From Mobula birostris (taxonomy: Eukaryota), in assembly GCF_030028105.1 (NCBI RefSeq), contig NC_092371.1, positions 14,157,884 to 14,221,883 on the forward strand: 64,000 nt of DNA, read 5' to 3'. The notes below the pieces were generated by a model that did no database searches, was not told where the DNA came from, and saw only the letters and a program-made list of their open reading frames with translations. The position numbers and the translations under genes are program-made. Positions 3,875-51,922 of the stretch are shown piece after piece (position 1 is the stretch's first letter; every line of letters begins with the position of its first letter).

Positions 3875-3981
3875 GTGAGAGTCGGATCGGTTTACGCACG
3901 GATTATCCGTTAAAATTGGGATTACTGCTGATTTTTATTTTGCTCCAAGTCACCCAGTGGTTTTATTGTGTTTTATTTTAG

Positions 3982-4335
3982 ATATCCACGCGGCCCCAGT
4001 GCTCAGTCAGACCTCAATGTCTGGACCTGTTTCCGCGGGACAAACCGTCCGTTTAGAGTGTCGGATTCAGAACGGTAATGTTGCAAGTTACGAGATGTAC
4101 TGGTTACGATAGCGTCCCGGGGAGAGACCGGAGAAGCTGGTAGAACATCAGACGGATAATGATATATACCGAGGACCAGGGATCACAAACCGTTTTCAAC
4201 CGTCCAGAGACTCCTCCAGCAACAGTCACATCCTAACCATCAGCAGTTTGGAACCCCGGGATTCCGCCGTCTATTACTGTGGAGCGTGGGATAATGGAGT
4301 TATCTTCGGTCCAGGCACCATCCTGGATATTAAGA
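3982..4335 (+). pseudogene. Fused VJ exon, cluster 1
   Basis: TTTTAG acceptor. Translation DIHAAPVLSQ...LEC...MYWLR*RPG...DSAVYYCGAWDNGVIFGPGTILDIK has Cys23, Trp41, YYC and FGxG in one frame, with no heptamer/nonamer between V and J. Confidence 0.93.
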
Positions 4336-6026: not shown

Positions 6027-6350
6027 GTAGCGATTCCCGGGAGCCCTCAGTTCTTCTGCTCTCTCCCTCTCGGGAGGAGATCGGCACGGGTTCGGCCACT
6101 CTGTCCTGTCTGGTGAGTGGTTTTAAGCCGGGCTTGGTAGCGCTGCGCTGGACCGTGGATGGAGTCGAGACGAAGAGCGGGGTGACGACAGGTGCCGTAG
6201 CCCTGGACACCGACCAGACCTACAGGCTGAGCAGTTACCTGCGAGTAACCACCGCTGCCTGGAACAAGGAATTATTCCTGCAGCGTGAGCCACAGCTCGC
6301 TGAGCTCGCCACTGCGCAACACCATCTCTTCGTCCGCCTGTGCGCAGTGA
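6027..6350 (+). pseudogene. C exon (C1-set Ig domain), cluster 1, frameshifted
   Basis: CACAG acceptor. Reads SDSREPSVLLL...ATLSCLVSGFKPG...W...SSYLRV...WNK, then shifts frame at 6269-6272. The homologous TGA is at 6348-6350. Length 324 nt versus 329 nt in copy 2. Confidence 0.92.
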
Positions 6351-27650: not shown

Positions 27651-28420
27651 GAGGTCTCTGTTCATTATTCCGCATATCACTCTGGTAGCGCATGATTATT
27701 TCAGTTGCTGTCGCTTTTCTGTCAGCTTGCGTCAGTATAGTCATGTTCCTCTGACCTCTCTCATTAACAAGGCGTTTTCGTCCACAGAGCTGTCGCACAC
27801 TGGCTTTTTTGTTCATTTTTCGCACATTCTCTGCATTCTTTAGAGAATTTTGTGTCAGAAAAATCCAGGAGATACGTAGTTTCCGAGATACCCAAAAAAC
27901 TCAGGCTAGTACCCACAATCACGTCAGATTCAATGACACTTTGATCACCTTTCTTCCTCATTTTGATGTTCGGTGTCAACAATAAACGAAGCTCTTCATC
28001 ATGTCTGAATTCTTCTATGGATTGAGTTGCTGCCACATGAATTGTTGATTAGAAATTTGCATTAACGTTCGGCAATACCCAATAAAGTGCGCACTGAGTG
28101 TGTAGATTAGTTGTGGGTATGATATACTGACGTCCAAAGCATTACGACATTTGAGAGCTACTTCGGACTATGGTGGTTGTTCACACAAACATTGTATTTC
28201 AATGTATGTATATGTGACAAATATCACTGATCATATCCTTGCCTTTGTTCTTGGAATGAGACGATATATTATGAAAGCTAGACTAAATAGTTTGCTCCCA
28301 TGCGCATACAATTAAATCCCGAAATTGCGTTTAGTTATAAGAAGCTGAGGTATTGCTCTTGATATCGCTCTTTATACTCCGCACATTCCGGAGCAATATC
28401 CATTTGTGCAACTCAGGACT

Positions 28421-28528
28421 GATTTGCATGAGAGGAATGACGTGACAAGTGAAAGGTACCGTATAAATATACTTGTAATCATCGCACCATCTTTCGGGGA
28501 AGGATGGCGCAACAGCATCTCAGTGAGT
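28421..28528 (+). promoter_or_regulatory. Orphan B-cell-type promoter with ATG and splice donor
   Basis: Decamer TGATTTGCAT (octamer 28422-28429), GAGGAA 28432-28437, TGACGT 28438-28443, AAGTGAAA 28447-28454, TATAAAT 28462-28468, aggATGG at 28504, and A|GTGAGT at 28523. Confidence 0.6.
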
Positions 28529-28789
28529 GCCCTTTTATTGCCTGCTTCACCTTTTCTGGGTTCGCACTAAGAAAGTCGTAAAGCAGTTAAATGCATGACG
28601 AATGAAAACACATCAGTTTGACACCGTTCCTGGATGTCCAATGACATATTTATTTTCCGAATCAGTACAGCAGATTTATTTCTCGTAACACTAAATTAAC
28701 CGTGTCAGCTGCAATGCCAATATCTTCTTTGTCTGAAGCTCATCAACCCCACTGGAATTTAGAACGCCGACAGATACTTCCTCTCCCAT

Positions 28790-28920
28790 GGATAGGGTCT
28801 TTGGATCTTCTCATGGCGTTTCTGTAGCTCTGGGGTTTACAAGTTGGGGTTGTTAGCCCAAGGCCCAACCCTCCTCCTTTCGCAGCCGGTCTTGGGACAA
28901 ACCACGGCGGAGTTACAACG
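28790..28920 (-). mobile_element. RTE-type LINE 5' fragment
   Basis: GGGTTGTTAGCCC...CCCAACCCTCCTCCTTTCGCAGCCGG resembles RTE 5' regions. Recognised from memory only. Confidence 0.4.
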
Positions 28921-29913
28921 ACAATATTCTGTCTAAGTATATTATTGCTGAATCGTAAGTCATACTGGGCATAAACGTTTAAAATGCCAGTGGGAGGGTG
29001 ATTTTGTCCAAGTAACATCTGCCGTGTGGTAGTGGAAGAAGGCAGCCATACACGGGATTATAATCGGCAAACCAATTTCAATGGCGAAGATACATGAGAT
29101 TCACTTTCCCATAGTTCTTATCACCACTTCAGCCTGGGAAGCAAGTTAATAATAAGGAAAGACATGATATGGCGTACTCGCAATTGACATGTATGACACA
29201 GAGTAATAATGGCAGAAGGGCATTGCTAAATCTGAAAAAGAGAGAAGTCCCTTTACTTCCTCAAGAGCGGTCGTGGGATTGATGTCCAATCTATTTGGAA
29301 ACATAAGGTGAATATTGAATGCAGGTCTTTCACCGTTACGCACTGCATTAGTCATACGCTCCGCAAGTGTCCTTTCCGAATTCCCGTTGGATTGCTGATA
29401 TCACATAAGTTACCATTTATTTTGCTGATGTCTATAAACTCATAATGAGCTGTTCGGAGTCCAGCCGTAAATTCCAGAAAGTTAAGGGAGATCCTCAGTC
29501 AATACCTTGCCTACAGGAGAGACTATTCATTCCATAGACCCTGTGACGTGGCAGCAGAAGAAGGCCGTTCGACCCTACAGGTCTCACAAGTGAAGAGCAG
29601 AAGCGGGTCAGAACTTCCAGAATCTGCATCCCTTCAATCACGCTCCGCCTGTCCAGTACCTTAACTCATTTTCACTGATAACCTTACTCCCTTATGAAGC
29701 CACAACTGATAATGTGACATTTCCCGTCCTCGAGATACGCTAAATTGCGTTAAGACGTGATAAAACACACACACGGCTCTGCATAAATGAAAATAAAACA
29801 ACTATCACCGAGCGATGAATCAGGGATTCAAATCACTGCGACAGAGAGTCCGACTCCATAGAACATTTTGTATTTCACAACACAGGCTTCTGGACTGTGA
29901 TAACATTAGAAGC

Positions 29914-30400
29914 ACAAGAATTCTGAAGATGCTGGAGATCCAGAGCAAAAACACACATGCACCTACACATTCGCACACACACAATGCCTGGGAAGTTTAG
30001 CGGGTCAGGCAACAACAATGAAAAAAATTGAGTCAACGTTTTGGGTCGAGTCCCTTCATCAGGATAGGTGATGCATCTTTGCCCTAAACGACGATTCTAT
30101 TCCTTTCCATAGATGCTGCTTGACCTGCTGAGTTCCTTCAGCAGTTTTAGTGTGTCGCCGCAGTTTCAAATTAACTGGGGTAATATATTAACTGGAAAAG
30201 AAGAATAGGTAAACGCAGGGAGCAAAGATTAAAAATTCCTGTGAAACTTCATTGTAAGTTTGGTCCTGAAAGAAGGGTCTCGGCACGAAACGTCGACTGT
30301 TTATTCATTTCCACAGATGTTGCCTGGCCTGCTGCGTTCCTCCAGCATCTTGTTTGTGTTGCTTTGGATTCCCAGCATCTACAGAACTTATTGTGTTTAG
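29914..30400. mobile_element. Cluster of Penelope-derived short repeats (head-to-head pair plus a third copy) with hammerhead-like motifs
   Basis: Minus arm 29914-30064 (motif 30031-30064), plus arm 30080-30160, and a further plus copy 30261-30400 (motif 30261-30299). Confidence 0.7.
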
Positions 30401-30654
30401 AATTTTGGTGCTGCATAACCTCTGATTTGTCCTCAGCTCTTTATGTTCCATTTTAATATCAGGCACATTCTCAGGGGTGATGTATCAAATATAATATAGC
30501 CAAAGTTGCTGACTATAGAAAACCGGGCAACAACGTGATTGGGAAATTGAATTATCCATAAAAATGATATCAAGAGGAGAATTAGGTATCATATGGACAA
30601 CTATAAGATTGTTGACTGCATAATTCAGACGCACAACAGGCCTTTCGGGTAGAT

Positions 30655-31736
30655 GATGTCTCTTTCGTGGCCCTGCGTGTTTGTACACCTGCATTTGTTA
30701 ATACGTTTCGTATCTAGTGTCGTTAACCCTTGTGCTTTCTGTTTCATCTTGGCAAGTTTATTTTGATTCGAAAGGATGTTATGTGTACTGATATTATTTA
30801 AGGCGGACTCCTCATTAGCACGTATGGTGGGGTCCTGATCTTTCGAGAAAGTTTCATCTCGCTGTGGTGCTCGGACAATCCATCAATGTTCTGTGGAATT
30901 GCTATGAATAAACTCTTGTTTCTGTCTCTACATCGGACCCTGTCGTTCCTCAGCACCTGGGTTCAGTCGTTTGTCAGCGCACACAGTGGCAGTAGGATCT
31001 TGAGCCACAAATGAACCTGGCGGAGTTTGAACATCCGCTTGGACAACGGTTAGCTGAAGACAAGCGTCCCTTATATTCTCAGTGCTGGTGTCGAGGTTCT
31101 GTTGCGAGTTTTCTTGTGCTTCCCACTGACCTATAGGTTTCCTTGGAATAGTCCATGTTCCTGAGTTATATGCCATGTTATCGATTTTACCAGCCCTGCT
31201 TCGAGAGCATCAGGTCTGTTTTGAGTTTACCTGTTAGGTCCTGAGAAATCAGGTCTGCCTCGAGTTTACCGGTCCTGTCTCCAGTGTATCAGGTCTATCT
31301 CGATTTTACCAGCACTTTCTCGATAAAATCATGTCTTTCTCGAATTCACAATCCCTGTCTCGAGTAATCTAGGGCTCATTGAGATGTCAGTTGCCGGCCT
31401 TAGGGAATGAGGTACTGTCATGAGCCATATGGGGCTATGGCCCTATCTTTGTTAATTGTTGTTTTATCTGGAGTCATTCAGCCATTTTGCATTCTGTTTT
31501 ATCTTGTCAAGTTTATTTTGACTGAAACGGGTTATCCGTGTATTACGATTTCTTAAAGTAGATTCCCCACTGGTACTTCTTGTGGTGTCCTGGTGTTTCG
31601 GGAAAGATTCGATTCGCTGTTGCTCAGTGAAGCCACTGATGTTCTTGTTGGAATTCTTACTTAAAACTGTCTCGATATGGGAGTCTGTGGTTCGTAAGCA
31701 CCTGAGTTTAGTCGTTTGTCAGCGCACATCGTGACC
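30655..31736 (+). mobile_element. Old miniature non-autonomous LTR element (TRIM-like)
   Basis: Diverged direct repeats at about 30655-30985 and 31416-31736. PBS-like TGGCAGTAGGAT follows the 5' repeat, a purine tract AGGGAATGAGG precedes the TGTCAT start of the 3' repeat, and the 430-bp interior is non-coding. Confidence 0.55.
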
Positions 31737-32539
31737 GTCTCATAGCTAGGGCTCCTTGTTTAATGAGGGTTGGGTGGTGGGGATAACGAGTGGAAGTGAT
31801 TGAATCTTCATACGGGTCTGGAACTCTGTTACCGAAAGACCCTTGGTGCTGAAACTCTTTATAAGATTCAGCGCTCAGTTTTCTCTTTCCAGAATTGAAT
31901 TATTCCATCAACATGACCAAATGCTCGCAAAATAAAAGCGGATTTATGTTCGGAGTTTTTAGGGTATATTTCAAAATGACAAATTGCTTCACATTTCTCA
32001 GTAAAAGGGTAATAATAAACGGGGGTGGGGCGCTGGTTGAGTATTGAGAACTCCGGGTGCTCGAAGCTCCGCTAGTGAACATGTGGTGGCGGTAGAGAAC
32101 CATCCAGGATCGGAGTCGGTCCTCATCTGCCAACATTTCGAAGGCTCCTAGCAGAATTTCAGCAGTTTAATAATATATTAAGCAGGGCATCATGTGCATA
32201 TCCGGAAGATCTATTTTGTTAAAGTTTTTGTGATATCGCTGTTAACACTGGCCACAATGCTCCACTTTTGTTCAGGGTTGAGTACAATTTAATGATTTAG
32301 GAATGAACTTCTTCCAACTTACAGAAATTCACCCAGAGACCACTTATTATGTACATCGATATACCCGATCATTAGTGTAAATATCTAATCAGTCAATCAA
32401 GTGGCAACAACTCAGTGTATAAAAATCCGCATAGGTGGTCGAGAGGTTCAGTTGTTGTTTGGATCACACAACTGAATGGAGCAGAAAAGTGCTCTAAATG
32501 AATTTGACTGGAATGATTGTTTTGCCAGATGGAGCGGTT

Positions 32540-32880
32540 CGAGTATCTCAGAGTCCACTGCTGTCCTGGAATTTTCACGCACAATTGTTACTGGGGTTTA
32601 CAGAGAATGATGCGAAAAACAAACAATTAAACAATTAAAGAAAAACATCCAGTGAGCAGCAGTTCCATGGGCTAAAACGCCTTGTTAATGAGGGAGGTCA
32701 GAGGAGAATAGTCGGACTGGATCAAGCTGACAGCAAGGCGACGGTAACTCGATTGTATTAACACAGTTGTGCACACCAGGGGATTCAACAGTGATGAAGA
32801 AAACATCTCTGATCGCAGAATATGTCGAACAGCAACAGAAGGTTATGAACATACAGGAGGTACCCGATAAAGTGTTAGGA
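32540..32880 (+). mobile_element. Tc1-like DNA transposon remnant (related end fragment at ~28040-28100)
   Basis: CGCCTTGTTAATGAGGGAGGTCAGAGGAGAAT...CAAGCTGACAG..AGGCGAC and AATAAAGTG..CACTGAGTGT resemble fish Tc1 remnants. Confidence 0.5.
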
Positions 32881-33589
32881 GTACAGATTATTATTATATT
32901 TCCTCCACTGCCTCTTCCCAATCCGCCTATTTACTTCTGCCATCTAATAATTCGTTGATTCGGTTAAATCTTGGATAGGCTGGTGGGAGGATATTCATGC
33001 CTGAACAGCTCACGTGAGACAAGTGAAAGAGGATACCAAGAACTGATCCACAGGTGTCGAAAAGTAACATGGGGAGAGCTGGAAGCCATTCAGAAACATA
33101 CGAGCTGACATAAACCAGTCACCAACGCCGGTAATGGAGTTCCTTGAGCCAGATTCATGCACAGTTGAGTTGTACAACACACAGGACCTGTTACATGGGG
33201 AAGAGCAGAGAGATTTGGCCACTTCAGCCTGCAATGGAGGAAAAGACGGAGGCTTTCTGTTCTTCAAGTCCAGTGTGGAGAGGAAATATTTGAGCCTCTT
33301 CCATCACCAGCTCATTACTGGGGAATAGCAGAAGGGGCGTTTTCCATCATGTGCATCAAAATTAAATGTGGAATTCATTGCCACAGACAGCTGTGAAAGC
33401 TTCTGCACTGGGTATATTCAAAGCGGAGGTTAAGGGATTGCTGATTAGTAAGGCCGTGAAAGATTCCATCGAGAAAGTAGGGAATAGTGTTGGGAGGGAT
33501 AATAAATCAGCCATGATGGAATGGCGGGTGAAGCGTGATGGGCTGATTCGCCTAATACAGCTCCTATGTTTCAAACTTGAAGATTAAGA

Positions 33590-35529: not shown

Positions 35530-36720
35530 GCAGCAAAAGACACAAAATGCTGGAGGAACTCAGCAGGCCAGCAGCATCTGTGGAAAAAAGCACAGTCGAC
35601 GTTTTGGGCCGAGATCCTTTATCAGGGCTAGAGAAAAGGTTGAGAATTGGTTGAGGTAGGTGTGGCAGGGTGGGAGGGGAGGTAGAAACACAACGTGATG
35701 GGTGATTCCGGGGGGTGGGGGTGGGAGAGGGCGAGGGATGTGTAATAAAGAGCTGGAAAGTTGATTGGTGAAGGAGATACAGAGCTGGAAAAGGGTTAAT
35801 CTGATAGGAGAGGACAGAAGGCCACGGAGGAAAGAACAGGTGGAAGAGCACCAGAGGGAGGTGATGGACAGGTAAGGAGATAAGGTGAGAGATTGGAATG
35901 GAAAGTGGAATTAAAATGCGTGGATATTGGGAGATCCCGCCTTTCCTGGCGTAGGTGCTCGGTGAAGTGGTCTCCGAATGTAAGTCGGGTTTCACCGATA
36001 TGCAGGAGGCTACACTGGTAGCACCGGATACAGTCGATTACCCCAACAGAATCACAGGTAAAGCATCGTCCCATCGAGAAAGGCTGTTTGGGTACCTGAA
36101 TGGCAGTGAGGGAGGAAGTGTAGGGGCAGACATAGCACTTGTTCCGTTTGCAAGGGTAAGTTCCAAAAAGGAATCAATGGGAAGTGACGAATAGTCAAGG
36201 AAGTCGCATAGGGCGCGAGGGAAAGGTGCTTGGTGTTGGGATTCCGTAGGAGATGGCGGAAGTTACGGAGAAACGTGCTGGACGCGAAGGCGGGGTGGTT
36301 GGTAGGTGAGGACAAGAGGAAATCTATCCCTGGTAGGGTGGCGGGAGAATGGGGTGAGGGCCGACGTGCTCGGAATGGAAGTGATGCGGTTGACGGCAGC
36401 GTTGATGGTGGAGGACGGGAACCCTTGTGTTTGAAGAAGGAGGACATCTTCGTTCACATCCTAAGAACAGATGTTGCGGAGACGGACGAATCGAGAGAAG
36501 GCGATGACAGTTTTACAAGTTTCTGGGTGAGAAGAGGTATTGTCCTGGTAGTTGTGAGAGTCAGTGGGTTTGTAATAGATATCAGTAGATAAGCTTGTCT
36601 CCAAAGATTGAGACAGAGAAATCGAGAAAGGAGAAAGAGTTGTTGGAAATAGACCATGTAAATTTGAGGGAAGCGTGGAAGTTGGAGGCAAAATTGATGA
36701 AGTCGACGTGCTCCCAATCA
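35530..36720 (-). mobile_element. Penelope-like retroelement 3' portion (RT thumb + GIY-YIG endonuclease + terminal repeat)
   Basis: LSTDIYYKPTDSHNY..TSSHP..CK..I.FS.F.RLR.ICS and FTC.S.GVI.CIRC..C.LLHIGET....GDHF.EHLR motifs. Terminal hammerhead-like motif at 35593-35629. Confidence 0.85.
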
Positions 36721-37369
36721 CGAAGTATGCCTTGAATAGGAGAAGATGACAAAAGTGTGATAAACCTTCAGACAGGAAAGAAATAAACAGTCAATGAATG
36801 GCTGAAGGAATGTATCGAAAGGAAGGATGGCACCAGTCTAGAGTATGGCCCTTTTGGTAAATTCGGATTTTGTAATGAACATCTTGGTGTTTACGTGGAC
36901 TTTAGAAGGATTTTTGTCAAAGATCCGCATGGTAAGCTGGTTCGGAAGATTGGACAACATCAGACAAGGATTGAGGGAGCCAATTACCTGAAAAAAGTTG
37001 GTGTGGCATTGGATTGAGAGCGTTAGTGAAGCATCCTTTTACACACTGGAGGACTGTTATCAATGGCGTACAACAGGGACATGTGTTGGCTCTACAATTG
37101 CTCGACTATAATAAACATTTGGAGGAGAAAGTGGTTGACATGCTTGGCATGTTGTACTTTGTGATGATAAACTCAATAACTCCCGCGTCAAATTGCAAGA
37201 ACCTGAGGAGTGTTGTAGAACAGAGATACCGAGGGACACCACAGGCAATATGAATGATGCTGAATCATGTTATGTCCAAACATATATCAATTCCAGCCTG
37301 GAATCTGGCCAGGCTATTAGAGAGTGAATTTCATCAGTTGTCAGTTGCTGACTGAACTGGGTGATATCA

Positions 37370-37780
37370 CAGTTTCTCATCCTGTCCACCATCGCTTAAC
37401 ACCCACGCCACCTCCCCCACGCCAACAGACAGGACTTTACCCGTGATAGTCTCGGCTTTAGCCAGTACTTCTTGTAGGTCTTTCCATTCAAGGTTACTGG
37501 TGTTTCCATAGCAGGCAGTGATACAAGCCGTCAATAGAGACTCAATCGTGCATCTATAGAAGTTTGTAAGAGCTTTAGATATCATGCCAAGCTTGACAGA
37601 CTTCAAAGAAATCAGTGGCCCTGCCGTGCGTTTTTGTAATGGCGATTGTGGGTTGGACCCTGGACAGAAATGATAACATCTCTGATATCCTGATAAGGAC
37701 TGGCTGAAGGATCTCCGACTTCCTCCCCCTGTAGTCAATAAACTGTTCTTTGGTTTTGCTGACATTCAGTGAGACATTGT
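37370..37780 (-). mobile_element. Rex1/Babar C-terminal fragment
   Basis: LTNFYRCTIESLLTACITACYGN motif. Confidence 0.65.
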
Positions 37781-38469
37781 TGATGTGGCACTATTCAGCC
37801 AGATTAGGACATTTCTTTGAGTCAGTCCTCTCCCCCAGGGAATCAAAGGTTACACGACCGACACGGAAACTTAGATCCGAAGACCAGTGGTAGATATCTT
37901 TCACAATCTGCCAGAGGTAGTGGTAAAGGGAAGTAAAATTGTGCAGTTTATAAGACATCCGGGCAGTTAGACCGATATTAAAATTTTACGGTGATATTAG
38001 TCAAACACATACAAATGGGATGAGCACAGTTAGGCAACTTGGCCGGCACGGACAAGTTAGGCAGAAGGAACCATTTCTGTGCTTTATATCTCTGTAAGTA
38101 TAAATATCGCTGCTCTCAGGGATAGGGAACTAGTGTCATAGTCGGTTGTCACTGAGGCTCAATAAGAACCACTCCTAGGGCTTCTAATAAATATCATCGC
38201 TGCGAATATCGTCTGGGCAGTGCTGGGGATATGACCATTTCATATCTTGGATAACAGTGAAGCAGTTGCGCGAGGTCCATGCGTGAGCCTATATATTCCC
38301 TTGTGTGTCTAGCGTTGAAATATTTATCCGGTCTTCAGATTGTGCTGAGGGTTGGTTCAGAGTTTAGGTGACTTACCGAGCCCATGATAACCCTCTGGAC
38401 TAGTCACAAATCCTCATGTTCGTCAAGTGAGTTTTCTGTTCGTTGCTTTCAGAGTTATACGTTTATCAG

Positions 38470-38914: not shown

Positions 38915-39210
38915 GTTTCAGAATGCGCCTCTTCATATTATTGCAGCTTCTCAGAATGAGAGAATTGAAAAACCGTTGTATGTCATCAACGCCCCCACCT
39001 TCCCGGCACCTCGCGATCGCGCCACCTGCACCACTTCACAAACAGGACAGAAACAGCAGCAATTTGTGTAACTGTCGCTAAATAAAGGCTGTACAAACCC
39101 CGTCCCGGTCCCGTGGGGAGATGACGCGGTCCGCAGCTGCATCAGTGCCGCTCACAACACGGACAGTCCGACCCTATCCATCCATCCGTCCCATCCTTGA
39201 CTCTGGTAAG
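38915..39210 (+). promoter_or_regulatory. Promoter/first-exon-like cassette, copy B (inverted homolog at 13325-13800)
   Basis: CACCTG 39023-39028, TAAATAAA 39079-39086, ATG 39121, CAGCTG 39134-39139, and CTCTG|GTAAG donor at 39206. Confidence 0.4.
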
Positions 39211-40524
39211 CGACTAAAAAAACAAAGGGGTCCTGGGTGAGAAAATTGAAAGCCCCTGACTGAATGAGGGAGAGGTGAACTGGACTGACCAGTGTACTAC
39301 GGTCAGGAACAGTTTGAGGGAGATTGACTATATCCTAGGTTATGAACGACACGTATTCGAAATTTTAATCACCATCTCTAATTATCCAATAAGAGTAAAT
39401 CGATAGAACAAGCCTTACTTAAGCCAGACTGCAGGATATTAAGCAATAGCATTTCACAAATAAAAACAAGCCAATGTTTCACAGTGCAGTTATTAGGTAA
39501 ACATTGATACCGTGTCACTTAAGTCGAACATTTAATTGGATGAAATTTTTTCTCATCTGTTACACAGTATCCAACAAATCGTGACAGAAGGAAGGCTGGG
39601 TGATGATGAACTAAATCATGGACAAGAGAAGGGAGATTTGATGTCCCACACGTGGCTCGCTGTTAATAACGTCCCTCACTACAGTGAGGATCAGCATCAG
39701 AATCAGGTATAATATCACATTCATATGTCGTGAAATGTGTTGTTTGTACCCCAGAGTGCTGAGGACCCGATTAAAATAAACATGGGATGTCATAACGTAA
39801 TAGAGTAGCACAACACCGAATCAGACCTTTCGGTCCATCTAGCCTGTTCCGAAATATTAATATGGTTAGTGCCTTCATTCTGCAGCCAGACCATAGGCCT
39901 CCATACCCCTCCCTCCATCCAAATTTCTCTTAAATGTTGAAATTGACCCGAATCCATCACAACCGCTGGTAACACTTTCTACACTCCCACCATCCTTAGA
40001 GTGAAGAAGTTTTCTCCGATGTTCCCTTTAAATATTCCATCCTTTAACCTTATGCCACGATCTCTAGTCATTGCCTGACCCAATATCAGTAGAAAAATGG
40101 CCTACTAATATTTTACCCTTGCTATATCCCGCGGTAGTGGCGTAGTAGGAGACATGAAGACCCACCAGAACTCCCACAAAAAGTATGTAAGAAGAAATTT
40201 AAAATAGAAAGTCATTTTTTCGATCGGATAGGGTCTTTTAAGAGACTCCTGGAATGGTACATGGAGCTTAGAAAAACAGAGGGCTGTGGGTAATCTTAGG
40301 TAATTTCAAAGGTAACGACATGCTCGACACAGTTTTGTGACGGAAAGGCCTGTATTGTGCTATAGGGTTTCTTTGTTTCTATGTTTCTATGAAAGGTTAA
40401 CGTGGATCAATTTCACACAGAGAATGTTAATACTAGTAAGTACATAAATAAAGCGTCGGTGAAATCATACACATGTATGAAAAATCAGAGGACGCCTTCC
40501 GGAAATATATTGGAATGACAGGCT

Positions 40525-43479: not shown

Positions 43480-46400
43480 CATAGGAGCAGCATTCGGCCA
43501 TCTGGACGATCGAGTCTGCTGCGCCATTCAATCATGACTGATCCTTTTTTCATCTCCTCCCTAACGCCAGTTCCCGTCCTTCTCCCCGTAACATTTGATG
43601 TCATGTCCAATCAAAAACCTACTAATCTCTGTCTTAAATTCTGACCCGGCCTCCACAGCTGCAAGTGGCAATAAATTCCACAAGTTCAATACCGTTTGGC
43701 TGAAGAAAATACTCCTCATCTTTGACTTCAAACGGCGCCCCTCTATCATGAGGCTGTGCCCTCTTGGCTTTCACTTTCCTACCATGAGAAACATCTTTTC
43801 CACATCTGCTCTGTGTTGGACACTTAACATTCCAAGGATTTCAATGACCCCCCCCCCGCCCCGCCTGATCCTTCTGAATTCCAGCGAGTACAGACCCAGA
43901 GCCATTAAACTTCTCTCGTATGATAACCCTTTCATTCCTGGAATCATCATTGTGAACCTCCGCTGGACTCTGACCAATGCCAGCACATCCTTTCTAAGAT
44001 GAGGGCCGAAACTTTTGACAATACACAAAGTGAGGCCTCACCAGAGCTTTATAAAGCCTCAGCATCATATCCTTGCTCTTGTACGCTAGACCTCTTGAAA
44101 TAAATGCTAAAGTGGCATTTGCCTTCCTCATCGCCGACTCAGACTTCAAGTTCACCTTCAGGGTATTCTGCTAGGCATTCCCAAACCCCTCTGCATTTCA
44201 GATTTCTTGATTTTCTCCCCGTTGAGAAAATAGGCCGTACATTTATTTCTACTATCCAAAGTGCGTAACCATGCATTTCCCAACATTGTATTTAATTTGC
44301 CACTTTCTAGCCCATTCTCCTATCCCGTCTAAGTCCTTTGCTCAACACTACCTGTCCCTCCACCAATCTTCGTATCATCTGCAAACTTGGCAACAAAGCC
44401 ATCTGTTCCATCATCTAAATCATTTATATACAGCAGAAAAAGAAGTGGACGGAACACCGACCCCTGTGGAACACAACGAGTCAATGGCAGCCAACCAGAA
44501 AAGGATGCTCTTATTTCTCCACGCTGCCTACTACCAATCAACCAATACTCTAGGAATGTTGGTAACATTCCTGTAATACCACTGGATCTTAAGTTGGTAA
44601 GCAGCCTCATGTGTGGCACCTTATCAAAGGCCTTCTGAAAATCCAAATATACAAGATCTACTGAACTCCCTTTATTCTACTTGAAATCTCAAAAAATTTG
44701 AACAGGTTCGTCAGGTAGTATTTTCCCTGAAGGAAGACATGCTGATTATATACTATGTTGTCCTGTGTCACCAAGTTGTCTATCACATCGTCCTTAACAA
44801 TTGACTCTAACATCTTCCCTAAAACTGAGGTCAGGCTAACTTGTCTATAATTTCCTTTCAGCTGCCTTCCTCCCTTCTTAAAGAGAGGAGTATCTTTTGG
44901 AAATTTTCAGTCTTCTGGTAATACGCCAGAGTCCAATTTTTATTGAAAGATCATTTCTCATGCCACCATAACCTCTGACGCTACCTCTTTCAGAACAGTA
45001 GGGTGCAGTTCCTCTGGTCCGGGTGACTTATGTACCTTTTGCTTTTTCAGCACCTTCTCTCATGGTTCTTTTTCCTTAAGCTCCCTAATCACCTCCGGTT
45101 GGTTACTAACACCGAATCCAGTATAACTGATCCGCTTGTAGGCACATCGACAAACTGCTCTAAAAAGCTATCTCCAAGGCATTCAACAAACTCACGCTCT
45201 TGAGGTCGATTACTAACTTTATTTTCCCAACCGACCTGCATGTTAAAGTCTTCCGTAACTACATTGCTCGTTTGAATCGCCTTCTATATTTCCTGTTGTA
45301 ACGTGTGGTCCACCTCTCAGCCACTGTTGCGAGGCTTGTATATAACTGCAATCAATGTCCTCTTACCCTTGCAGTTTCCCAACTCAACCCACAAGGATTC
45401 AACTTCTTCCAATCCTATGTCACATCTTTCTATTGACCTGATCCCATTTTTACCAGTAGAGCCACACCAGTCCCTCTGCCTACCTTCATATTCCCCCGAC
45501 ATAACGTGTAACGTTGGATATTCTGCTCCCAACTACAACCATCCTTCAGCCACGATTTAGTGATGGCCACAGCATCATACCTGCCAATCTGTAATATTGC
45601 AACAAGATCATCCACCTTATTTCTTGTACTACGGGCATTTAGATACAACACCTTTGGTACTGTATTTACTATCCTTTCTGACCTCGCATCCCTATTGTTC
45701 TGATAATCAACCTGATGGCTGCAACTAAGTTCCATCATTGCGTGTCCTTCCGGATAATCTGACTGCACGCTATCTTCACTTTTTACCATCCGTCCTATCC
45801 TGAATCCCTTCACTCCGGTTCCCACCAACTTGCCAAGTTAGCTTAACCCCTCCCCAACAGCTCTAACAAACCCGTCCGCGAGAATATTAGACACCCTCGA
45901 GTTCAGGTGCAACCCACCACTTTTGAACAGGTCATACCTCCCCCAGAAGAAATCCCAATTATGCAATAACCTGACACCCTGATTCTCAGCCATGCATTTA
46001 TCTGCAATTTATCTGCATTTATTCTACCCTCGCTGGACTGTGGCTCAGGCAGCAATCCAGAAATTACTACTCGGGATGTCCTGCGTCTTAGCTTTCTACC
46101 TTGATCTCTAAATTCTCTTTTCAGGATCTCATTTCTTTTCCTTCCTATGATTGGTACCAATATGTACCAAGAAGTCTGGCTGCTCCCCTGACCCTGGCAC
46201 CTGGGAGGCAACATACCATTCGGGTGTCTCGTTCACGCCTCCAGAATCTCCTGTCTATTTCCCTCTCTATCGAGTCCTCTATCAATGCCGCTCCTTTCCT
46301 CTCTCACTTTCCCTTTTACTCTACTGCCCCATGCTCGGTGCCTGTAACCCGGTCGCGGTGGCATTCTCCCGGGTGGTCATCCTCCACAAAATTATCCAAA

Positions 46401-46520
46401 GCGGTATACTTCTTTTTGAGGGGAATAGCCAGAGGGGTGCTCTGTTCTAACTGCCCATTTCCATTTCTCCTGACAGTCCTCGCCTCCTGCAACTTCGGGG
46501 TGACTATTTCCGTGTAACTT
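43480..46520 (-). mobile_element. CR1 remnant shared with the cluster 1 flank
   Basis: RT C-terminus, endonuclease and ORF1 pieces. Same 5' truncation junction as at about 1700. Confidence 0.85.
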
Positions 46521-48040
46521 TGATCACTGTATCTCCGCTCTCCTCACATTAAGGAAGTTCCTGCAGATCATCCGGGAAACAGGGTTAGAAAACGTGATCG
46601 GCAAATCTCTTGGTGATCTCTTGGTAATCGTGTCATAACTTACGCAGTAGAAAGATTGGCAATAAGCGGTCGCAGTGAATGTTGATTATCAGAAGGCCGC
46701 CCGTAAAGTGATTCGCAAGAGCTTGCTGAAGAAAAAAATCCAGCTGTTCACAGTGTATATGTAAACACTTGGACAAGGGAATGAAGTGTAATAGTGCCAT
46801 GTTTGTTGATTGTCAAGGTTATCAGGGCAGTGCAGAATGACTGAGATGATGTTCATAGATTAAGAAAACAGGCAGGAATGCAAAATACTGAATAAAATGT
46901 GGAAAACTTGAGGTGATGTGCAGAAAAACGTTTTAAATTGGAGTCTCTTTCAATGGCGAAATGGCGAGGTCGTGTGTGCAAGTTCATGTTGAAGTTTACT
47001 GCCAATTAACCATACACATGTACACAAAAGAACCTCCCTTACTCTGAGGCCAAGGTGAAAAGCAATACATATTAGATATAGTGACGATCCAACACACGCA
47101 GTCAGAAAATGGATATTAGTATGGATGTCTGAGTGGCATGGCCTGAAGATCGACAGGTTGACATGAAGTGGAAGTGAATGTTTATGTAAGGCAGAATAAG
47201 GTTTATTAATCCATCTATTTGTGAATGTATTTATTTGTTTGTTGTATTTGCACAGTTTGTATTATTTTGCACATTGGTTGTTTGACCGTCTTAGTATTTA
47301 GCTTTTCCTTGATTCTACTGTATTCCTTAATATCTACTGCGAATGCCCGCAAGTTAATGAAACTCAGGGAAGTATGTTATGTCTTACCGCACTTTGATAG
47401 TAAATTTATATTCAACTTTGAATTTTATGATCCCAAGCCTGTGACCACGGTCTAATTTATAAGCCTCAATTAATCAAACCAGTGGTTTCTGTTCAGTGGT
47501 TTCCCCGGATGTTGATGGCGAAGTAAGGTCATGGAACGTCACGGGCTGGTGGTCAGGTCCTTTCCTGTTGACAGGGGCCATTGCTGGGAACTAATGTAAA
47601 CAGACTGATGTTTACTCCTACCAGCCTTCCCTGACCATTTTTGGAGTCTTGTTCCATGCCTCAATATCTCACTGTCGGAAAATTACATGACTGGGATTTC
47701 AGGTGAACGTTCTCGGACGTAAACGGCGACCGTCTATTTCCCTGCTGAGATGCTGCCTGACCCGTTCAGTCCTTCCAGCTCTTTCTGAGTTGCTCCAGAT
47801 TCCAGCATCGGTGCAATTATTGCTGAAATTCCCATCTAATGATATGCGTAAGAATCACTGCGGAGAGGAGCACTCCTACTGCCCAGCTGCGTTGATTGCG
47901 TTTCATTGCAACCTCTTTGCACAATGAATGACCCTAATGTCCGTCGTTAAATGGAATTCTGCCCAAGTCTGCTTTAGAGACGATAGAGAAAAACACTTGT
48001 CCGTTGGGAGTTAACCATTTTTGCGACAAAATTTATTTTC

Positions 48041-49185: not shown

Positions 49186-49206
49186 ATTTACATCGCAGTT
49201 AATAAA
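49186..49206 (+). promoter_or_regulatory. V promoter of cluster 2: ATTTACAT + 5 nt + TTAATAAA
   Basis: Conserved with copy 1. Two GC boxes (CCGCCC) lie immediately upstream. Confidence 0.55.
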
Positions 49207-49325
49207 CGGGCACAGAGACCCCAGTTTGTTGGCTCTGAAATTTGAGCAGTCTCCCGAAGTTTGCAGAGCAACGCATGGTTCGGTCGGAATTTTTGGGTGC
49301 TCGCTGTCTGCACCTGTCCGGAGGA

Positions 49326-49374
49326 ATGTCCCCAGCGCTGCATCTCCTGTGGGTTCTGCTGGTTCATTTACCAG
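49326..49374 (+). CDS. Leader exon, cluster 2 (MSPALHLLWVLLVHLP)
   Basis: ATG at 49326 and CCAG|GTGAGA donor. An alternative in-frame ATG lies at 49275. Confidence 0.9.
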
Positions 49375-51635
49375 GTGAGAGTCGGATTGGTTTACGCACG
49401 GATTATCCGTTAATATTGGGATTACTCTTGATTTTTATTTTGCTCCAAGTCACCCAGTGGCTTTATTGTTTTTTTTAATTGCAGATATCCATGCGGCCCC
49501 AGTGCTCAATCAGACCCCAATGTCCGGACCTGTTTCCGCGGGACAAACCGTCCGCTTAGAGTGTCGGATACAGAACGGTAATGTTGGAAGTTACTACATG
49601 AACTGGTACCGACAGCCTCCCGGGGAGAGACCGAAGTGGGTGTTAATACATACCACAGGCAATAGCATATACCGAGGTACAGGAATCACAGACCGTTTTC
49701 AGCCGGCCAGAGACACCTCCAGGAACAGTCACATCCTGACCATCAGCAGTTTGGAGCCCCGGGATTCCGCCGTCTATTACTGTGCAACGTGGGATAATGG
49801 AGTTATCCTCGGTCCAGGCACCATCCTGGATATTAAGAGTAAGTGACTCCCTCATTATGTTGCAAGCAATTCCTATTACAGCCAATCTCATTCCCCACAA
49901 CTGGATAAAACACGCTCATATTTCTGCATTGTGGGAGGTTCCATTTGCCTCAGTCCGGCAGAGAGGCCGTTCAGCTATTCTTGCATACTGTCCATAACGA
50001 TCACGTGATGGCAGTGCATTGAGTTGAACACAGCTTAATGCAGAATAAAATGGACCAGCCACACAGGAAATGTAGTGCAGGTAGATAAATTGCAAGATCA
50101 TAAGGAAGGAGATTGCGAGGTCAATCGTCCATCTTATTGTACGAGAAAACCATTTAATTGTCTCATTACAGCGGCCCCTCTTTGATGTCAAATTAAACCC
50201 ATTCCTGCTGTCTACACATACTCCATATCCCTCCATTCTCAGCACACTCTTGTGTTCGTCCAACAGCTGTTTTAAACATTCGTATCTGACTCCTCCACCT
50301 CATGCACCCATCACTCTCTATTAAAAGTAAACATTCACCGAATTTCTCCTTTAAATTTTCCTCCTCTCGGTTTAGATTTCTACCCTCGGGGAAAAAAATC
50401 TTGACTGTCGATCCTATCGCTATCTCCCGTAGGTCTTAAATAATGTTCACACATATTTGGGGAAATAATCGCTACCACAAGCATGACATATTCCCTTTCC
50501 TCTTCATTCACCACCTCTGAGCGAATATTCCATAATTTTTCTTGGGGTAAATCCTGCACCACAGAGCAAGATGTTCACCACTTCAAGTTAACGCAGTTGA
50601 CAGTGTGTTGTTAAGAACCGTGTCATCGTCTATGTAGAAAACACAGGAGAAGAACATCCTACTTTAAAAATAATACACACTAGGGGAAGGTGCTGGGTGG
50701 AAAACAGGCTGGTCACAGAGTCGAGCGGTAATAAACCGGGTTACTAGGGGTTCGGAATGCAATGTGGGTCTGAATGAGTAGTTTCGCCTCTTCCCGCTTC
50801 TCACCGGTTCACAGACCTGCTCTTTTTTCCGCCATTTCCTCCTCAGTCACTGGGTACTGAGTCTTAGATATCGATTGAGCTTCCCGAACTCGGGACATCC
50901 CAACTGAAGGTGTAATATTTTCAGTTATTGTCCTAAGAGTTGAAGATTTGGGGAGTTATTGGAGAACAACAAGGAACTGATCTCACTAGAAGGACCAATC
51001 ATATGGGCACGGTGTGGGCAGTCAGCAAAGAGATTGAGTAGTGTTGAAGTTATCTTTTAACACAATGCAGTGCCGGGAGCAGAGTGGATTCAAAAACATT
51101 TTTTTAAAGAAAAGATGTCACTTCGTAGCCGCGCAAGGCTACGAATAATCTGGGCAACTCTTCACTCAAAGCTTTATACCCGAGGGGTCAAATGTGCCGT
51201 TTACTGTGTCCCAATGACTGTGTTAATTTCGGCGCTGGTGTTTCTATCTTTGAACATCTATGAAATAATATTGTTTCTACTCCCCTTCGTCTCCTCTCTC
51301 ACACAGGTAGCGATTCCCGGGAGCCCTCAGTTCTTCTGCTCCCTCCCTCCCCGGAGGAGACCGGCACGGGTTCGGCCACTCTCTCCTGTCTGGTGAGTGG
51401 TTTTAAGCCGGGCTTGGTAGCACTGCGCTGGACCGTGGATGGAGTCGAGACGGAGAGCGGGGTGACAACAGGCGCCGTGGCCCTGGACACCGACCAGACC
51501 TACAGGCTGAGCAGTTACCTGCGGGTAACCACCGCTGCCTGGAACAAGGGCTCGAGCTATTCCTGCAGCGTGAGCCACAGCTCACTGAGCTCATCGCTGC
51601 GCAACACCATCTCTTCGTCCGCCTGTGCGCAGTGA
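49326..51635 (+). CDS. Ig light chain cluster 2, sigma-cart (type I/NS5) isotype, germline-joined VJ; join(49326..49374,49485..49838,51307..51635), 243 aa
   Basis: 49+354+329 = 732 nt, open to TGA with canonical GT-AG introns. V begins APVLNQTP and C ends WNKGSSYSCSVSHSSLSSSLRNTISSSACAQ, matching my recollection of shark NS5/type I light chains. Confidence 0.93.
49485..49838 (+). CDS. Fused VJ exon, cluster 2
   Basis: TTGCAG acceptor. Reads DIHAAPVLNQTPMSGPVSAGQTVRLECRIQNGNVGSYYMNWYRQPPG...DSAVYYCATWDNGVILGPGTILDIK, followed by donor A|GTAAGT at 49839. Confidence 0.95.
51307..51635 (+). CDS. C exon (C1-set), cluster 2, intact
   Basis: Polypyrimidine tract and CACAG acceptor. Both domain cysteines, the Trp and the C-terminal interchain Cys (SACAQ*) are present. 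Confidence 0.95.
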
Positions 51636-51922
51636 GAGTGTGCCGGCTGGCAGCACATGTGGATTGTTTGTTTTTGTTTAATGCAGTGAAGCAATCATTG
51701 TGTCTGTGCAGCAGCCCATTGCAATGTACTTGTGTAGTCATGTTCGCTTATGGAAACAATCAGAATGTTTAAAAATTTCAGAACAGTTGGCAATAATAAT
51801 CCATCTTTTGCGACGGATAATTCTGTGTAGAATTGCCCCCACTGTGCTGTGTCTGAACTACCGCTCTGTGTGGTCTCAGGAGCGATCTCCCGTGCTGGTT
51901 TGAACTTGTGTACACAACTCTG

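Follow-up and report, generated by a model that had tools for sequence, protein, structure and literature searches.

The locus and its features

The stretch analysed here (the window, 64,000 nucleotides) is chromosome 3 (C3) 14157884-14221883 of Mobula birostris and contains two light-chain clusters, both on the plus strand. Cluster 2 has a proximal promoter and leader exon, a germline-joined VJ exon and a C exon (Table 1). Its protein matches come from light chains of rays and skates, among them the type I (sigma-cart) chain of skate, so the sequence-only reading, in which these genes were called sigma-cart, had the isotype right. That reading also described the real sigma-cart genes as carrying only a variant octamer, and the octamer of cluster 2 is indeed ATTTACAT. 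This variant and the TATA-like box are kept in five of five aligned copies, and the leader, encoding MSPALHLLWVLLVHLP, is 97% identical. The V protein of cluster 1 is 80% identical to that of cluster 2, and its C exon is partial, with residues 1-78 of 105 aligned at 95% identity. Cluster 1 is possibly truncated or pseudogenised.

The start codon of the light chain has two candidates. An in-frame ATG lies 50 nt 5' of the leader ATG (49277-49326) and adds 17 residues, MVRSEFLGARCLHLSGG; public models of 260 aa from M. birostris and M. hypostoma begin there. Annotated light-chain proteins begin with MSPALHLL or MVRSEF. Because 49277-49326 is conserved in the aligned copies, the true start codon is ambiguous.

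Far upstream of cluster 2, the spacer holds a cluster of promoter-like motifs (hereafter the element). Every motif that the sequence-only reading listed is present on direct inspection, the decamer beginning at 28420 instead of 28421. The geometry is promoter-like as claimed: 40 nt separate the first A of the octamer (28422) from the first T of TATAAAT (28462), which places the TATA box about 33 nt beyond the octamer. The element thus has the layout of a V-gene promoter, with an octamer at most about 100 bp 5' of the start site and then a TATA box.

Table 1. Features of the window, numbered from its first nucleotide
Feature	Position	Strand	Remarks
Cluster 1, V exon	3981-4334	+	
Cluster 1, partial C exon	6035-6268	+	
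Dispersed repeat directly 5' of the element	27668-28101	.	3461 first-look candidates genome-wide, 73-77%
Locus-specific spacer block bearing the motif cluster	28289-28700	+	Homology unit common to 6 close and 4 distant paralogues
Block of 8 CpGs	28366-28509	.	Retained in 43/48 paralogue comparisons; decayed CpGs flank both sides
Decamer TGATTTGCAT	28420-28429	+	Direct reading; octamer ATTTGCAT at 28422-28429
GAGGAA (PU.1-type)	28432-28437	+	Direct reading
TGACGT (CRE half-site)	28438-28443	+	Direct reading
AAGTGAAA (IRF-like core)	28447-28454	+	Direct reading
TATAAAT	28462-28468	+	Direct reading
Putative 19-nt coding start (MAQQHL plus 1 nt, phase 1)	28504-28522	+	ATG 28504-28506, context aggATGg
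GTGAGT donor-like hexamer, phase 1	28523-28528	+	Direct reading
CpG-rich island	39014-39154	+	Strongly conserved, 5' of every close cluster (query 38950-39260)
Cluster 2, proximal promoter and leader exon	49186-49375	+	ATTTACAT 49186-49193, TTAATAAA ~49200, ATG 49327, donor after 49375
Cluster 2, germline-joined VJ exon, type I (sigma-cart)	49484-49839	+	Matches to skate type I light chain and manta/ray models
Cluster 2, C exon	51309-51632	+	Start approximate

The arrangement of octamer and TATA box is unusual in one window and is expected many times genome-wide. The window has a single case of ATTTGCAT with TATAAA 20-45 nt behind it, where 0.04 would be expected, and 4 of 100 dinucleotide shuffles yield one or more. 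The octamer ATTTGCAT itself occurs three times, a second forward-strand copy lying at 28055, inside the dispersed repeat. GAGGAA, TGACGT and AAGTGAAA are short, common motifs that were selected post hoc; the first two have 69 and 21 sites in the whole window. A C/EBP-like TTGTGCAAC, a GAS-like TTCGGGGAA and a Pol III-type T-run past the donor were set aside as post hoc pattern matching. The sole Rfam match, twister-P1, is at chance level, its 24.3 bits falling short of the gathering score (67.2).

The element belongs to a family of spacer copies

The element, previously described as an orphan, sits in a spacer block that exists as seven close and four distant copies; the block runs colinear with the rest of the light-chain cluster unit as far as V and C. 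Searching the whole genome with 28300-28700 found 11 places, all within C3 14.08-15.14 Mb. The close family comprises the window copy and six full-length paralogues (P02-P07) at 79-84%. The four distant copies (L008-L011) are partial; they gave 69-80% in the whole-genome search and 63-68% identity over 170-440 bp when realigned with sensitive blastn, their overall range being 63-72%, and their wider surroundings were taken from coordinate maps only. Homology to the distant copies begins abruptly at 28304 (28252 in L011). The P03 and P04 units show an inversion breakpoint at 28289, and the 640 bp immediately 5' of their element lie inverted.

When 30-kb paralogous regions were compared by BLAST, a colinear block emerged from about 27645 to past 49000 at 78-86%, broken by LINE and other insertions. 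According to maps of C exons and of promoter/leader sequences, every intact close copy has a germline-joined V-C cluster on its own strand, with the leader 13-22.5 kb further 3'. A truncated inverted unit is headed by the seventh close copy (C3 14749597, minus strand). The check for paralogues that had been proposed from the sequence returned ten, all in the same array; for the intact close copies the V-C clusters lie 13-22 kb away. No copy was found by the whole-genome search at the other light-chain loci (C3 96-97 Mb, C30 and C12).

The array is built of long and short units. Spacer adjacent to the element (28960-29950) was found only in element-bearing units and one inverted fragment, and proximal spacer (36400-37400) is present in all 11 close clusters; this distribution defines the two kinds of unit. 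Across C3 14.08-14.78 Mb, the type I array contains long units with the distal block (27.6-33.6 kb), short units without it and one inverted, truncated unit. The element lies upstream of 6 of the 11 close clusters. Of the five without it, four have no distal block at all, and in one a rearrangement removed the element. V and C exons persist in all five (one C partial, one C with a TAG), and three have uninterrupted C exons (14138670, 14301386 and 14761673). Light-chain clusters do not need the element.

The element appears to drift with its spacer

Judged on an alignment of the seven close copies, on a k-mer comparison and on the four distant copies, overall conservation of the element appears ordinary for the spacer and consistent with near-neutral drift. 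Scored over 100 bp at a time, the paralogues match the window copy of the element at 0.853-0.887, which falls in the 62nd-88th percentile of the 643 spacer windows scored (mean 0.838); the same measure gives 0.97 for the leader and 0.93-0.95 for the V exon. Outside CpGs, invariance is 0.705 for the element and 0.677 for the opening 180 bp of the putative intron, and in the distant copies this "intron" aligns at 70-74% versus 64-68% for the motif part. The element contains three of the four longest invariant stretches, which are 9 bp each, and the runs TTTCGGGGA and GGCGCAACA lie within the putative 5' UTR/exon.

The decamer is the only motif kept somewhat better than typical k-mers, ranking in the top 6% of alignment 10-mers. 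It is intact in six of seven close copies, P02 having TGATTTTCAT, and degenerate in all four distant ones (TGCATTGGAT, TGCATTGGGT, TGCATTGCAC and TGCATTGCGT). TGCATTG replaces TGATTTG in both older lineages. With three deep lineages and no octamer in the two older ones, parsimony makes the perfect octamer a derived feature, probably gained in the close family instead of being anciently conserved.

The remaining promoter motifs are not conserved among the paralogous clusters. GAGGAA and TGACGT each occur in one copy of seven and are single-base novelties private to the window; the family consensus at 28432-28443 is TAGGAATCACGTGAC (GATAGGAATCACGTGAC), which holds the E-box CACGTG. AAGTGAAA is intact in four of seven copies and is unremarkable. 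TATAAAT is exact in three, altered to TATAAAA in P06 and TATACAA in P07, and lost in P03 (GTGGAAAT) and P05 (GGAATAA); a 9-bp insertion sits just 3' of the TATA site in P05, P06 and P07. Five of seven have the ATG, which reads AGG in P06 and GTG in P07; the distant copies do not conserve it. The donor GT is present in all seven close copies, as GTGAGT in five, GTAAGC in P05 and a weak GTCAGG in P02; GTGAGT also occurs in L010 and L011. Octamer, TATA box, ATG and donor are retained together only in the window copy and P04.

CpG retention is a local exception

The sole hint of function in the element is the retention of its CpGs, a pattern that would fit a site unmethylated in the germ line better than base-by-base selection. 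Eight CpGs between 28366 and 28508 are kept in 43 of 48 comparisons, versus a rate of 0.58 for the spacer, which ranks second of 377 eight-CpG runs. A version restricted to ancestral CpGs, found in at least two lineages and independent of the window copy, gave 0.855 versus 0.66 and ranked second of 95. The empirical p is about 0.005-0.02, a signal that rests on 8-10 sites only. Decayed CpGs lie upstream (28070-28303) and just beyond the donor (28563-28701), so that the protected block stops at the donor. The CpG observed/expected ratio is 0.83 in the element versus 0.57 in the spacer.

Only one other stretch of spacer, 31599-31730, has equally high CpG retention (0.90). It lies inside an internally repeated segment in which 30715-30993 resembles 31482-31728.

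Contigs give no support for transcription from the element

Expression was assessed in small, contig-only runs of this species whose RNA status was guessed, with X1 flagged as "probably DNA". The share of 49200-51700 represented is 0.78 in X2, 0.58 in X4, 0.38 in X5 and 0.31 in X1. Since exons make up about 0.33 of this interval, all four are probably transcriptomes. None of 28250-29250 is covered by the contigs of X1 and X2. Across 27900-33500, contigs of the four runs have zero depth over 28087-28647; the shortest aligned pieces are about 50 nt, so that a first exon of about 35 nt would go unseen. The MAQQHL start is absent from the annotated manta light chains, all of which use the proximal leader or the in-frame upstream ATG. 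The absence of contigs is no support for transcription and is not proof of silence.

No V or C remnant between the element and cluster 2

The exon-like sequence behind the motifs does not resemble the start of an immunoglobulin gene. A V leader exon codes for some 15-17 hydrophobic residues and stops in phase 1. MAQQHL shares only the phase: its six polar residues, in place of most of a hydrophobic signal peptide, are by their composition and length too polar and too few to be a leader. No V exon or remnant was found in the few hundred base pairs past the donor, and tblastn of V and C domains against 27600-49000 yielded no V or C remnant (best E 0.45). The interval between the element and V yielded no conserved coding island. 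A hidden gene in that interval was considered and dropped, as its ORFs of at least 50-70 aa are LINE/RT debris. Alignments of the element to the genuine V promoter/leader and to the 39-kb island showed no similarity, with scores within those of shuffles, and the idea that the element is a diverged copy of either was rejected on that ground.

A conserved island lies closer to the V gene

A CpG-rich island at 39 kb resembles an enhancer or upstream promoter of the clusters and, on its conservation, makes a much stronger regulatory candidate than the octamer motifs. One island copy lies 5.5-10.2 kb upstream of each of the 11 close clusters, whereas the element is present at 6 of 11. It is 95-96% identical among close paralogues and contains the E-boxes CACCTG and CAGCTG and a near-invariant 55-bp core (39038-39095). 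In divergent clusters, the core is kept at 80-85% versus only 71-75% for the V promoter/leader. An ATG (39121) and GTAAGC donor within the island are not conserved as an exon, because other copies have GTCAGC.

Conservation of the spacer increases toward the V gene. Proximal spacer at 36750-38300 and 45875-47575 is about 89-93% identical among paralogues, versus a spacer mean of 84%, and has no ORFs. Either regulatory sequence or gene conversion in more recent times may account for this high identity.

Origin and possible function of the element

We consider the motif cluster to be an inert promoter look-alike in a co-duplicated spacer block that drifts near-neutrally, a reading to which we assign a probability of about 0.55. 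The block would have been copied passively as type I (sigma-cart) light-chain clusters duplicated in tandem. Octamer, TATA box, ATG and GT would already have been present in the common ancestor of the close copies, and the copies would afterwards have drifted near the neutral rate of the spacer. We infer that the element is transcriptionally inert. It is neither promoter nor leader to the neighbouring light-chain gene, whose own conserved proximal promoter and leader lie 20.9 kb 3' of the element. The case carries a caution, in that a perfect order of octamer, TATA box, ATG and donor can sit in spacer that drifts neutrally, and duplication of the clusters can multiply it.

Two other origins for the element are much harder to sustain. 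The first of three options in the sequence-only reading traced it to a lost immunoglobulin gene, perhaps of another isotype: promoter and exon 1 would have survived after V and C decayed or were deleted. The V-light-type octamer-TATA geometry, the phase-1 donor at 28523 and the location within a light-chain array all suit this idea, and we nevertheless hold it to be very unlikely: 27.6-49 kb has no V- or C-like remnant, six polar residues stand where a hydrophobic leader of 15-17 is expected, the ATG is lost in two of seven close copies and in the older ones, and there is no likeness to the genuine sigma-cart promoter/leader. The other light-chain loci (C3 96-97 Mb, C30, C12) have no copies, the perfect octamer is missing from older copies and so looks gained, not inherited, and under neutral decay a promoter would not outlast its own exons. 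Derivation from a transposable element, as a fragment or a solo LTR with its own promoter, would account for the promoter-like TATA box and for the sharp 5' boundary of homology at 28289-28304, close to a dispersed repeat. It can be given hardly any credence, because the genome has only 11 copies, all at one locus, and because repeat-derived contigs, drawn in thousands by the flanking repeats and present at 27900-28086, are missing from 28087-28647. The upstream repeat itself ends at about 28101. Membership of a transposon consensus had been named beforehand as an outcome that would undo the promoter proposal; with every copy confined to C3 14.08-15.14 Mb, it does not apply. A Tc1/mariner label for the ORF at 27764-28036 was dropped when Pfam gave no match, and the flank is still a dispersed repeat.

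A working but dispensable cis-regulatory module in about half of the clusters is a more serious alternative, possible though less than probable. The element would then be a small unmethylated promoter bound through its octamer and E-box, with a very short non-coding first exon and a sterile upstream transcript, or an enhancer-like site. CpG-specific protection confined to 28366-28508 and the raised CpG observed/expected ratio (0.83 vs 0.57) point this way, as do the decamer in six of seven copies, the GT donor in all close copies, the invariant TTTCGGGGA and GGCGCAACA in the putative 5' UTR/exon, an orientation shared with V-C in every intact unit, and an exon ending in phase 1 as Ig leader exons do. 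Set against this, the four runs that contain the V-C gene have no contig over the element and annotated models bypass it; the TATA box is lost in two copies and altered in two more, and the octamer is missing from P02 and from all older copies. Conservation outside CpGs is at background, five of 11 clusters lack the element, and the CpG result concerns 8-10 sites, with 31599-31730 scoring equally high.

We think a more specific version of regulatory function improbable. It holds that a germ-line-unmethylated distal promoter with octamer and E-box arose in one subfamily of ray type I clusters and drives a sterile transcript with a short first exon through the germline-joined V-C cluster 13-22 kb 3', or acts on that cluster as an enhancer. 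If true, such a distal-promoter layer would be a regulatory level not yet described for cartilaginous-fish Ig clusters, and a distal promoter or enhancer would bear on how the many independent clusters of these animals are activated and excluded. To our knowledge, regulatory elements of these clusters beyond the proximal octamer are hardly known, and our literature search found no paper on distal elements of such clusters.

Comparison with known systems

The element resembles mammalian V-kappa and V-lambda promoters in layout. Those promoters carry the decamer TNATTTGCAT about 70 bp 5' of the start site and a TATA box, and depend on Oct-1, Oct-2 and OCA-B. The element likewise has a forward decamer, a TATA box about 33 nt further on, an ATG in good context and a phase-1 donor. 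Unlike them, it has no signal-peptide leader or V exon behind it, the nearest V being 20.9 kb away; its motifs are unconserved among paralogues and no transcript was seen in the contigs.

Promoters of mammalian sterile Ig transcripts offer a second parallel. I-mu lies in the intronic enhancer, and kappa germline promoters lie upstream of J-kappa. The likeness consists of an octamer promoter 5' of coding segments and a putative short non-coding exon with a donor. Unlike the mammalian loci, the cluster here is VJ-joined in the germ line, with no rearrangement to make accessible, and the element is missing from half of the clusters.

Local CpG protection without general sequence constraint also recalls the non-methylated islands and low-methylated regions of vertebrates, a likeness read from sequence alone. 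The element differs from them in its small extent, about 150 bp, and in having only 8-10 CpGs and a GC content of 45%.

The closest counterparts are the proximal promoters of cartilaginous-fish light-chain clusters, where an octamer stands just 5' of a split leader, as in nurse-shark NS4 (PMC2193156). Unlike the element, the genuine promoter of the cluster lies at 49.19 kb and keeps its variant ATTTACAT in five of five copies, and the two have no similarity in sequence. What the element shares with these proximal promoters is the kind of locus and the class of motif.
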